DNA from: Orbicella franksi
Lineage: Eukaryota
Direction of reading: 5' to 3'
DNA: 64,000 nucleotides
Assembly (NCBI GenBank): GCA_964199315.1
Contig: OZ116707.1
Coordinates: 16,306,001-16,370,000 of the forward strand
A program made the position numbers and the translations under genes. Positions 26,083 to 42,119 of the stretch are shown one piece after another. The first letter of the stretch is position 1, and each line of letters begins with the position of its first letter. The notes under the pieces were generated by a model. The model saw nothing but the letters and a program-made list of their open reading frames with translations. It did not search any database and was not told the DNA's origin.

Positions 26083-27477
26083 AACACGACTATCACAATG
26101 GCAGACACCGCAAGAGTCCTGGATTGAGTTACGTGAAAACGAGGTCAGAAAGGCCAAAAGATTTAATCGTCTCTTTTTGTATACAATGGCAATTACTTTA
26201 TTATTTCTTACAGAAAATAATACACCTAGCGCTTCTCCTCATGGAAGAAAACATCAGGAATTAAAAATCTCGGAGCTCAAATTTTGGCTCAAATGATCTG
26301 GAGACACGGGAAAAGGATTAAAGACAAAAGCAGAGCTGGTGAAGTGAGTGTATGAGTACATACGAACAGGCAAAGACAAACAGGTCGTGGGTCTAGATCC
26401 TCACAAAATCTACAGCCCTAGAAAGGAAAAGCAAGGTACAAGATCTGAGCCCGACACTGAAATCAATGAATTGGTACAGTTTCCTAGCTCTAGATAGGGA
26501 ACATCACTGGAAAAGATGCCTATGTTTACGCGGCTCCAGATGAATCGCCATGTTTTGAAGTCTGGAAAAGTGATCACCAATGTAGATCATCACACCATTC
26601 CAACCTGATTAGTAAAGGCCAGGCATTTCTTAGAAGACAAATACCTGGAAGATATTGAATGTCTGAGTGATTCCAGATACTTTTTCTTTAAAAGGAAGTG
26701 TTGCCATAGTTTCAGAAAAAGCGACCCTCATAATCTGCAATTTTCCCTATGTATGTTGTCTGGAGAAGTGGTGAGTGCTTCTTGTTCGTGTGTGGCAGGA
26801 AAAGTTGGATTTTGCGACCACGTATTGCTGCTGATGTTTAAGATGTGCAAGTATACTTTATTTTCTTCTTCTACTACTAAAGATCTAAGTGAGGAACAGG
26901 ATCAACAGTCCTCCATAGCTTGTACTTCTCAACTCCAGTGGCACAAAAAGGTGGGGGAAGAACATTGCCCCTCAACCAGTAATGGCAGTAGAAGTGAGAA
27001 AAATAAAGGATGCTGAATCCACTTCATGGTCTGGTATCAAACTGCTTGTGTATGATGCAAGAATGAAAAATACGCATAATCTGGCTACTGAGCAAATTCT
27101 CAAGGAGCAGCTGAGAAAAATTGATCCCAATAAGGGCCTATGAAAGGCTAATGAACAGACTGACCAGGCAGGTGCTTGACATGTGGAAACAAAGTTTGGC
27201 AAATTTCAAGTTGGCAGTTTCTTGTCATGTCAAGTTGCTCTAACAGAATCACACTTTGAGGCCACTGCATCTGTTAGCTGCATTTCAAGAGTTGATCAAG
27301 TAAATAACAATGCTGTAATTATCCAAGGTTTCCTCTAAGCATAGTTGGTAGAGACTGGTTAGGAAACTCGGCAAACTTCAAAGAGATATGTCTTTGTTTA
27401 CGATTTTCAACGTCACATGACATTGACCCTGCACACAATATTTCAAGATGGCGTCCGGTTTCTAAGTTTATATAGCA

Positions 27478-28140
27478 TGTGATGAACGCTCAATGATCTA
27501 TTGTAGTCTTACCGCAGTATTACGTAGTTCCGTTCTAATCAAAGGAACAATTCAGCCTTATAGTTTCTGTACGTGCACGTAGCTATTAGATTTGCCAGTT
27601 GTATCCTCGCTTTCACCACGAACGCAAGTCACCTAAGTTGAAGAAGTTAAAAGTGACTGCCTAGTGAAGCCAAAGCAGTCTACCTTTAGAGGCAAGCGTA
27701 GGACTGATATGTAAGTGTTGTCTTTACCTTTTAATAGTTAGTTTCCACGGAATTCTCAGTTAGTTTTCTTATCGATCGTATCTTATTAGTTATTGCAATT
27801 CCGTATATAGACTTGCTGTTTTCTACTGCCCTGCAGTCATAAGGTTTAGGTTAGTTTCTAGTTTCGTCGCAGTTTAGTGTAAGTTAAGTACATAAGTATC
27901 ACGTGGACCTCAATGCTCGCAAGAAGAACTGTTTCTTTAGTAGCTTATGCTTTATTTTTAATCAAATTTCAGTTTACGGCTAAACAACGATTATCGCAAT
28001 TGGTGCCAAGGAAATAAATCAATTTGTCCTACACATCAGCGTGCTTTATTTCGTCAGCCCGTAAAGTAGTCCTATCTTTAAAAGTCGTCTTCACCGGCTC
28101 ACGACACCTCTAGTTCGCTTGAGAGTCGCCGGCCGCTACA
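27478..28140 (+). repeat. 5' LTR
   Basis: Direct repeat of 33338-34000 with 7 substitutions by my base-by-base comparison. Confidence 0.96.
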
Positions 28141-28206
28141 GTAAAATATCAACGTTGCCTCTTAAGTGTTTTGGATTGTCAATGAACTACTAAAGTGTCG
28201 TTTGCA

Positions 28207-39127: not shown

Positions 39128-39523
39128 TACTTTAGGTTTGGTTTTGAAGTCATGTAAGCAGAAGCCAATCAGGTCCGGTTCAGTTCAAAACTGTCTTGTT
39201 CCTTGTAAACATAAAATCAATGAAGTGAAGTGAACTTCACTTTGTTTCCAGGTATCTATTCTCAAAGGTTGAAGTAAATAGCAAGGTACATGCATCTACA
39301 TCTGGGTTCAAGATTCAAGATTCAAGATATTAATATCAACTGTAACTATCAAATACATGTGCCCAACTAGGGGTGTGACCCAACAGACTCTAGATCGGGC
39401 TAAGAAAACTCGACCATTTGAGCGTCAAATATTATTACTTCAGTGTATACTGTTAATAAATAATGTGTATAAAAATCAGAAATATCCTTATAATTTAACA
39501 GTAAACAATCCTAATATACTACC

Positions 39524-40619
39524 CTAGTTATGCCTCTCTTGAGCTTGCTTGAGCTCGCAACCTCTTTGGATTTCTTTACGTAGAGCCTTACCTTTAGATT
39601 GCTTTGCTTTAATTTTAAAGTCTTGTATGATGTCCTTGGCTAAAGAGAACGAGCGAACCCTAAGGTACAAATTTACAATACTGTGTAGGACATCTTTACT
39701 AACATTCTTAGTGGGAACCAGTTCAGCATCTGAAACCATAGTTTGGTAGTTCGATACCACATCACTATCAGACTGACTTCTGAGCTATTCCAGCAATGTC
39801 CACTCGTTGCAAACCACCAGCAACTTTCAAAGTTGACTGTCTGAAATAATGTTCGGTCCTAGAAAATATGAATTGTGCAGACTCTGTTATAGGCCAGAGA
39901 CCACTGCAGTCCAAACTGGAAACCAGCCTTTGTGAAGCAGAGCCATACTCCAATTTCCCAGCTTTGAGGATAGCCATTGCCTGCTGGCTTTCATTTGAAA
40001 ACTTTCTTCCACAATTTTAGTGAAGATTGTGCAATACATACCCACCCAAATACTGCAGCCCAGCCTTCTCTTTCTCTGATAAGACAGTTTTGGATGAACA
40101 CTGTTGTCATGAGATGACTTCATATGCTTGCAATGTGCGAGCATACTATCAGCCACTTTAATTACTAGCAATGTAGCTGCATTTCGGGATAACCCTCTAA
40201 AAAAGCTTTTAGATTTCAGTGGAATCTGGGCATAATATTTCTCATAAAACTTTTCTCTGTCTCCCTTCTTTAAGTATGCATCAAACAGTATTTTAAACAC
40301 GGAAAATTCCTCAGTTTCAGTAAGCTGTCCGTCCTCATAGTGCTTGAATTCGTCCCGTAAGTCAGCGTTTTTATTCCTTTTCATTGCAGAAACATTTACC
40401 AATTACCTTGAACAGACAAACTAGAGGTTGTTTATATAGCAACCGAGCTCGCATTCCACTCCAGCCGAAACAAAAGCAGAGAATTTTTAGATTATTTGTA
40501 CTTACATCACTTACTGAGCTTTCAAATTGCTTCTCCAAGTCTTCATCGCCTTCTAGGATATCCAGAATGGCTTCGAAATCTTCCCCGAAGAGGTAGAGAT
40601 CATTCATACTGTCCGCCAT
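39524..40619 (-). pseudogene. Second, convergent gene of the P-like element (unknown function), frameshifted
   Basis: ATG at 40619 inside the subterminal repeat, exon 1 40619-40506 ending at GTAAGT; then [46 protein letters not shown]. Confidence 0.6.
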
Positions 40620-42119
40620 CTTGTTTTGAGTGTGCAGGGTCAGTATCACGTGATGGGTCAGTTTAACATCAGAGAGCCACTATTGTTTTGGTCCTTTGAA
40701 GTTCGCCGAGTTTCCTAACCAGTCTCCTCTACTAACTATGCTCTAAGGGTCATTGACAGCATGGTAATTCCTGATAATTTGTCTGAGAATGACCAGAAAC
40801 TTTTACAATCTTTAACTTTAGTTGAAGATGAAATCAATGAACTGGAAACTCAAACAAGGAAATGAACTGAATGCTCAAAATGGAAGGAAGATAGAAAATT
40901 CAGATTTACAGCGTCACAATATCATTTGATTTCGAAACGACAAAGAAACCACACTACATTTGCTGAGCAACTGATGAATTCCACACCAGCTTCTTCTAAA
41001 TATTTAGAACATGGCAAAAAGTTTGAACCAGTTGCTCTAATGGAGTATGAGAAGTTCATGTTCAACAGGACACCTGTTAAGGTACTGCCCTGTGGACTTG
41101 TGGTATCAAAAGGATGTCCAGTTTTAGGTGCTACCCCTGATGCACAAGTAGTTGACTTTGGCTGTACTGATTACTTTGGGATAGCAGAAGTTAAATGCCC
41201 ATACACCAAGTATCAGGTCACACCCCTTGATGCTTGTACAGATGCAAAGTTCTTCATGGAACAGACCAGTGTTTTGGGGTGTAAATTAAAGGAAGACCAC
41301 CCCTACTATGCAACAGAATGCACATACTGCCCACATCTGGTTTACAATTCCCATTTAATGTGGTGGAACAACTCTGTCCCATATGTGAAAATTCTTAATC
41401 TTGTTGATGGCACGTTTAACATGCAATTTCCTGCAAAATATTCTCCCTGTATAATTTCTTGAGTGCCTTTGTTGCAAAATTTTATTGCTATCTATAGAGT
41501 AGAATAATCGTAAATTTTACATTTGTCAAAGTACCGCTCAACAACTACAACATTTTTGTTCGTTGAACCAAACTGAGAGTTGCTCTTCAAGGAGCATGCC
41601 AGAAGAGCCCCATCTTTTTATTATATAAACTTATACCTCTGGTGTTCTCTGAAGATGAGCTAGCTAATTCCTGAGGCCTTGGAATTCCCACCATCACTAC
41701 TAAATCCGCAACTTCCAAGCAGTCCATTGCAAAGTTGCCATTGGATAGCTACAAAGTGGCAGCTTGTAAGGGTATGATGACCAAGTCACGTGACATTTGG
41801 CTGCTGAGCAAGGTTTCGTGGTCAGGGGAATGTTTTGGCTTGCGAAGTTATTATACCGCCACATGTTGCTCTATTGGTAAGAGTTGCTTTTATCTGCTTG
41901 CCTTCATTTGTGCTGATTTGACCTTATCATATTTCCGCAATTCACAGAATGTTTGATGGCGTTCCACATCCAAAACAAGGAAGCATATTCTAACACCAAG
42001 GAGGTGAATTCAGCTTTCACACAGCAGATCACTTATGCAGAAAGAGAAGCCTATGGTAGATAAGAGTAGGCTAAAATATCCTTTAAAAAAATTCCCCTTT
42101 TCCTTTTGTTTATTATAAT

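Follow-up and report, generated by a model that had tools for sequence, protein, structure and literature searches.

The 64,000-nt window analysed here, which is the whole of the stretch taken from Orbicella franksi contig OZ116707.1 (assembly GCA_964199315.1, positions 16,306,001 to 16,370,000 of the forward strand) and is free of N runs, contains between positions 27340 and 40740 a P-type unit in which a THAP/P-type transposase gene on the plus strand (gene 1) is met by a convergent second gene on the minus strand (gene 2). This copy of a two-gene P superfamily transposon is dead; it has an internal deletion, and two later insertions are found inside it. The two-gene layout is a trait of the family that extends beyond the window copy. 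Judged from its sequence, the transposase of this clade ends after the RNase H domain and is without the C-terminal domain (CTD) of other P transposases, and gene 2 is predicted, most clearly from a structural model, to carry a P-CTD-like domain. With fair though not high confidence we infer that the gene 2 protein acts in trans as a DNA-contacting CTD subunit of the transposase-DNA complex.

The unit is bounded by terminal inverted repeats (TIRs) of approximately 47 nt, both of which open with CATAGTT.GTAGAG, and by a target-site duplication (TSD) of 7 bp. A 31-nt TIR core was matched twice in the window, only at the two ends of the element, where shuffled sequences gave an expectation of zero. 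A 24-nt subterminal inverted repeat together with the motif CAAGATGGCG is also present at both ends. The original prediction had described one TIR- and TSD-bounded unit with two convergent genes; the TIRs, the 7-bp TSD and both genes were all located, as were the motifs it had quoted from gene 2, LQYLGGYV and LDCSGLW, the second of which is a decayed version of RGGLW, a sequence nearly invariant across the gene 2 family. The features of the element itself are as follows.

27333-27339: left copy of the TSD, CTCTAAG
27340-27383, plus strand: left TIR (CATAGTTGGTAGAG...), with a 33-nt core 97% complementary between the two ends; kept in siblings
27413-27453, plus strand: left subterminal inverted repeat (24 nt, 88%), followed by the CAAGATGGCG motif
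34095-34322, plus strand: gene 1 exon 1, THAP zinc-finger DNA-binding domain (Pfam THAP, E-value=2.8e-4; tblastn match to P0037 residues 1-76)
34682-36316, plus strand: gene 1 main exon, with coiled coil, helix-turn-helix (HTH) and the N-terminal half of RNase H, ending in a premature stop
36320-36330: breakpoint of an internal deletion of approximately 1250 bp (by BLASTN against sibling L001, 36325 corresponds to L001 3410 and the match resumes at L001 4662)
39527-40402, minus strand: remnant of the gene 2 main exon, helical N-domain plus predicted P-CTD-like domain, in three reading frames
40497-40619, minus strand: gene 2 exon 1, acidic leader (MADSMNDLYLFGEDFEAILD...), matched in tblastn by P0165 residues 1-41 and P0178 residues 21-65 (alignment A1)
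40694-40740, minus strand: right TIR
40741-40747: right copy of the TSD, CTCTAAG

The main exon of gene 1 possesses a PF21787 (TNP-like_RNaseH_N) domain (E-value=1.9e-22), is 88% identical to the relative P0001 and is matched by residues 79-635 of P0037 using tblastn; the score of the THAP exon falls under the Pfam cut-off. With sibling L001, which is 91% identical, as the reference, the deletion can be seen to have taken, besides the final exon and the catalytic E motif, the greater part of the inserted GTP-binding domain. Gene 2, which starts at 40619, carries frameshifts near 40090-40106, where sibling contigs have four additional bases at 40090, and near 39771-39784, as well as an in-frame stop at 40017-40019. 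It is also short of approximately 243 bp between 40369 and 40470, the part that encodes a C2H2 zinc finger in siblings. Both genes are therefore dead in the window copy, gene 1 through its deletion and premature stop and gene 2 through its stop, frameshifts and lost finger, and this inert copy is of no consequence for the host. All searches were made with separate window pieces or with intact open reading frames (ORFs) from siblings.

A word search with gene 1 returned 622 relatives, the full-length ones having 882-884 amino acids, and contigs were fetched around relatives of both the transposase and gene 2. At every one of the eight other loci that extend to the position of gene 2, this gene is convergent to the transposase; L001 is uninformative in this respect, its contig ending before gene 2. 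Three of the loci (L002, L005 and L006) are close siblings from coral assemblies, and L003, from Stylophora pistillata, likewise has a convergent gene 2. The locus from the sea cucumber Holothuria leucospilota (L004) carries a convergent gene 2 that is 35-37% identical (E-value=1e-47), and in the marine metagenomic loci (L007/L008 and L010) the transposase is approximately 47% and gene 2 approximately 30% identical. Sibling TIRs open with CATAGTT or CATAGTC, and 7-bp TSDs were recognized at L002 (GTTTAAC), L005 (GTCTGAA), L007 (TGTCAAC) and, with one mismatch, L006. No TSD was found around L003, and no TIRs were found around the Holothuria copy; the latter, at positions 8001-12815 of its contig, holds both genes and may be old or domesticated.

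Both genes are open in L005 (6312 bp), L007 (4980 bp) and L010 (5681 bp). The last of these (1-5681), a distant member from a marine metagenome, carries 47-nt TIRs with 100% identity and is, on its sequence, a candidate active element. Between siblings, at unsaturated dS (synonymous divergence) values of 0.2-0.5, the ratio of nonsynonymous to synonymous divergence (dN/dS) was 0.21-0.26 for gene 2 and 0.08-0.16 for the transposase main exon. Both genes are maintained, gene 2 somewhat less tightly. The original prediction had made its proposal depend on siblings having gene 2 and on purifying selection acting upon it; L002-L008 and L010 have the gene in the same convergent position, and such selection is seen in the gene 2 ratios.

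A separate observation concerns a deletion derivative (L012, 1-2556) which has a TIR, an intact, intron-less gene 2 of 391 amino acids and two short transposase fragments; copies with gene 2 as the only intact gene therefore exist. The CAAGATGGCG motif occurs 105-120 nt inside both termini of the window copy (27444-27453 and 40613-40622) and of L002, L005 and L006, and also at one end of L003. At the gene 2 end the start codon of this gene is the ATG within CAAGATGGCG, and at the transposase end an mRNA-like contig (L011) starts with a close variant of the motif, CAAGATGACG. We take the motif to resemble a YY1-type initiator, and its copies may mark symmetric, inward-directed promoters.

The transposase of the clade comprises a THAP domain, a coiled coil, an HTH and an RNase H fold into which a GTP-binding domain is inserted. 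In full-length relatives Pfam recognizes THAP (E-value=1.4e-5 in P0037 and 2.9e-6 in P0009), HTH (weakly), RNaseH_N, GBD and RNaseH_C (weakly); PF21787 and PF21788 are above the cut-off in these proteins, and the window copy retains the N-terminal half only. Using the Drosophila P transposase structure (PDB accession number 6P5A, chain A), the alignment of P0037 (882 amino acids) and P0009 (884 amino acids) runs to residue 561/569, through the QD.LE..FG catalytic motif, with an E-value of 1.2e-17 and with both the DEMK and QD.LE motifs included. The proteins stop approximately 38 residues past aligned 6P5A residue 561, and approximately 38-56 past the C-terminal RNase H motif. No CTD model of Pfam was matched in any of the 120 best relatives, nor in any of the scanned full-length transposases. 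The stop codons of the two genes lie 132 bp apart in L007, too close for a CTD exon to be concealed between them, and Logan contig L011, which by its sequence behaves like a spliced mRNA, joins the three exons in a single ORF of 884 amino acids with the identical stop position. The element thus has the TIRs with a 7-8 bp TSD, the THAP domain and the RNase H domain of the P superfamily, and departs from its single gene that includes the CTD, the CTD-like domain being found in gene 2. It had been proposed in the original prediction that gene 2 could be a duplicated domain; this part did not stand, since the clade transposase itself has no CTD, and the domain appears to have been split off into a gene of its own.

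Intact gene 2 proteins are approximately 380-395 amino acids long. Alignments A1 and A2 show an acidic leader followed by a single C2H2 finger and two helical domains, the N-domain and a second one, both conserved, with a long, basic helix at the C-terminus. The family comprises stand-alone proteins of 290-410 amino acids; the word search gave 402 matches and an exhaustive profile search 2818 representatives at E-values of at most 1e-3, the best 150 of which are essentially all stand-alone, with no fusion to a transposase. One 570-amino-acid jellyfish protein (P0341, a Rhopilema esculentum gene model) joins APEH_N to a gene 2-like domain; probably the gene model runs across a transposon insertion and fuses the two. 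The window pieces of gene 2 and an intact sibling ORF gave no Pfam match. Across the family, the Pfam model matched by most members was Tnp_P_element_C (PF12596; 39 of 93 members at E-values of at most 1, best 4.2e-5), always on the LQYLGGYV segment and at profile positions of approximately 55-104. For THAP9_C (PF22824) weak precomputed matches are on record; these were absent from our own Pfam scans.

The gene 2 protein was modelled with AlphaFold from a 93-sequence alignment (predicted local distance difference test, pLDDT, 79). The top structural match of this model was the CTD of the Drosophila P transposase (6p5a_B, residues 617-734; Z=10.3, rmsd (root-mean-square deviation) 2.7 A), 116 of its 118 residues being paired with residues 206-364 of the model, and the basic C-terminal helix of gene 2 resembles the helix of the Drosophila CTD. 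When 48,161 chains were scanned without seeding, 6p5a_B was the sole match with Z of at least 8, the next best having 6.7, and in a re-alignment seeded with Foldseek it again came first, followed by a match with Z=5.5. Foldseek alone placed it 47th by E-value (0.91), yet with the highest probability listed (0.60), and it was only because of the structural re-alignment that it stood out. The resemblance to the C-terminus of P transposases suggested by the original prediction is thus supported by the fold match, by sub-threshold matches to PF12596 and, weakly, by THAP9_C; at the sequence level the signal, though weak, is consistent, and the structural signal is clearer. For the N-terminal helical domain no convincing fold match was obtained (best Z=5.7). 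Another candidate explanation of this domain, that it repeats the CTD-like part within the same protein, was rejected (hhalign probability 1.5%).

The CTD of the Drosophila enzyme (residues 566-751) is all-helical, ends in a basic helix and lies wedged between the RNase H of one subunit and the partner subunit's GTP-binding domain, where it touches both transposon and target DNA (PMC7776569, PMC10824691). As a CTD subunit the gene 2 protein would supply this domain in trans to the transposase-DNA complex, and its zinc finger and basic helix would add DNA contacts. With each gene adjoining one end of the element, separate transcription could adjust how much of either protein is made relative to the other, and separate expression of gene 2 could set the efficiency with which excised elements integrate. 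Several observations weigh against this proposal. Drosophila and human enzymes deprived of the CTD are reported still to excise and integrate (2026 preprint, doi 10.64898/2026.08.31.747927), so that a subunit of this kind might be non-essential or have a regulatory role. The PF12596 matches score 13-19 bits in every individually checked member, under the gathering cut-off of 22.6; the Drosophila CTD chain did not come up when the PDB was searched by sequence, whether the query was a single protein or profile A2 or A4; and for helical folds a middling Z can arise by chance. No reads were found on the window copy in two polyA RNA runs. Contigs labelled as RNA from metatranscriptomes do contain related copies, and such runs may include DNA.

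That gene 2 specifies a regulator or repressor of transposition, which damps integration or occupies the element ends by means of its zinc finger in the manner of truncated P proteins, is the main alternative, though an unlikely one. Removal of the CTD raised integration by human THAP9 by approximately 60% and left the Drosophila enzyme unchanged (doi 10.64898/2026.08.31.747927), and a regulatory role would also suit both the separate start of gene 2 near the opposite end of the element and its dN/dS, which is above that of the transposase. Known P repressors, however, retain the N-terminal THAP part and not the CTD (PMC7776569), the DNA contacts of the CTD in the solved complex are made within an active assembly, and it is difficult to see how a gene that does nothing but repress could persist in different phyla when the element itself has to keep transposing. 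It is a good deal less probable that the fold match is a chance likeness between helical bundles and that gene 2 encodes an unrelated accessory DNA-binding protein with C2H2 and helical domains. The sub-threshold Pfam scores and the failure of hidden Markov model (HMM) searches of the PDB to reach the CTD chain speak for such an explanation, as does the fact that helical models can reach Z values of up to 13 by chance. A chance resemblance nevertheless appears unlikely because three independent signals agree: the only chain to reach Z of 8 is a P transposase CTD aligned over almost its full length, the commonest Pfam match among members is Tnp_P_element_C on one constant segment, and the partner transposase belongs to the one P clade without this domain.

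It is very improbable that gene 2 was captured once, by the window copy alone, or that it represents a piece of a canonical transposase inverted in this copy only. The end of gene 1 in the window does coincide exactly with the point at which the missing domains should start; this truncation, however, is a separate 1.25-kb deletion, and the layout is shared by the eight other loci, which include intact copies and one from a different phylum. An inversion of the 3' end of a canonical transposase in the window copy alone is ruled out by these sibling loci.

Two insertions are nested within the unit, and the coordinates given for them in the original prediction (BEL, 27478-34005; pogo, 36740-39129) proved correct.

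27478-34000, plus strand (27473-34005 with TSDs): BEL/Pao-like long terminal repeat (LTR) retrotransposon, recognized by its LTRs, TSD and ORF domains
36738-39129, plus strand: pogo/Tc5-type DNA transposon with a decayed transposase (29-nt TIRs; DDE_1 and HTH_Tnp_Tc5 domains)

The BEL/Pao-like element possesses 665-bp LTRs, which end at 28140 and 34000 and are 98.9% identical, a 5-bp TSD (TAGCA, 27473-27477 and 34001-34005) and an uninterrupted gag-pol ORF of 1570 amino acids with matches to DUF1759, RVT_1 and rve. Judged from the LTR identity and the uninterrupted ORF it inserted recently, and it may come from an active family. Contigs from two public runs link 36737 straight to 39128 and represent the empty site of the pogo element, the insertion of which therefore came later than that of its host element. 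The spacer between the two genes also holds a stretch of approximately 226 bp (36427-36652) between perfect 14-nt inverted repeats, which is likewise held by sibling L001. In run X6 the contig depth here is approximately 1,200-2,550, compared with approximately 12 across most of the surrounding element, with 36426 and 36625 as the ends of many contigs. The stretch has the appearance of a miniature inverted-repeat transposable element (MITE)-like repeat of very high abundance.

Cut-and-paste transposons of the PIF/Harbinger type encode a transposase and, beside it, a Myb-like DNA-binding partner. They resemble the present elements in that a second DNA-binding protein is needed, or at least carried next to the transposase, and differ in belonging to another superfamily with unrelated proteins, the partner not being known as a domain that is fused in sister elements. 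MuDR (mudrA/mudrB) and RAG-like (RAG1L/RAG2L) elements share the arrangement of two convergent, inward-read genes between TIRs; their enzymes and partners are unrelated, and their second genes are not known to be split-off transposase domains. The 66-kDa and KP repressors of the P element are, like the gene 2 protein, additional P-derived proteins, and they modulate transposition; they are, however, N-terminal truncations which retain THAP and arise from the same gene (PMC7776569), whereas gene 2 stands on its own and corresponds to the other end of the protein. Drosophila P and the vertebrate THAP9/Pdre elements have one gene, the product of which includes the CTD (residues 566-751 in DmTNP); in contrast, the transposase of the clade described here ends after RNase H and the CTD-like domain lies in a convergent gene with its own finger and leader.

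The published overviews and studies of P and THAP9 that were consulted deal with single-gene elements. A two-gene P-type layout was not found described in the searchable literature; a catalogued Repbase or Dfam consensus with two ORFs may exist. The CTDs of the P element transposase and human THAP9 have been called functionally uncharacterised, with a fold found only inside those proteins and guessed to be a case of domain accretion, and the Drosophila and THAP9 CTDs have been treated as independently evolved (doi 10.64898/2026.08.31.747927). The stand-alone family would link both, because it gives weak matches to both the Tnp_P_element_C and the THAP9_C models. We tentatively raise the possibility, which seems to us rather doubtful, that the P CTD began as a separate accessory gene and was later fused into the Drosophila P and THAP9 enzymes; alternatively, the clade would represent a natural fission. 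The stand-alone family would also offer a ready two-plasmid system for dissecting CTD function.

A CTD fold that is specified by its own gene, beside a transposase without a CTD, would constitute a natural separation-of-function experiment, in which CTD dose, CTD partners and the balance of excision versus integration become testable by adding or omitting a single gene. The transposon clade concerned is widespread, its members including those of corals, a sea cucumber and marine metagenomes. It informs how multi-domain transposases assemble or split, and it brings a two-gene layout to a superfamily which had been deemed single-gene.

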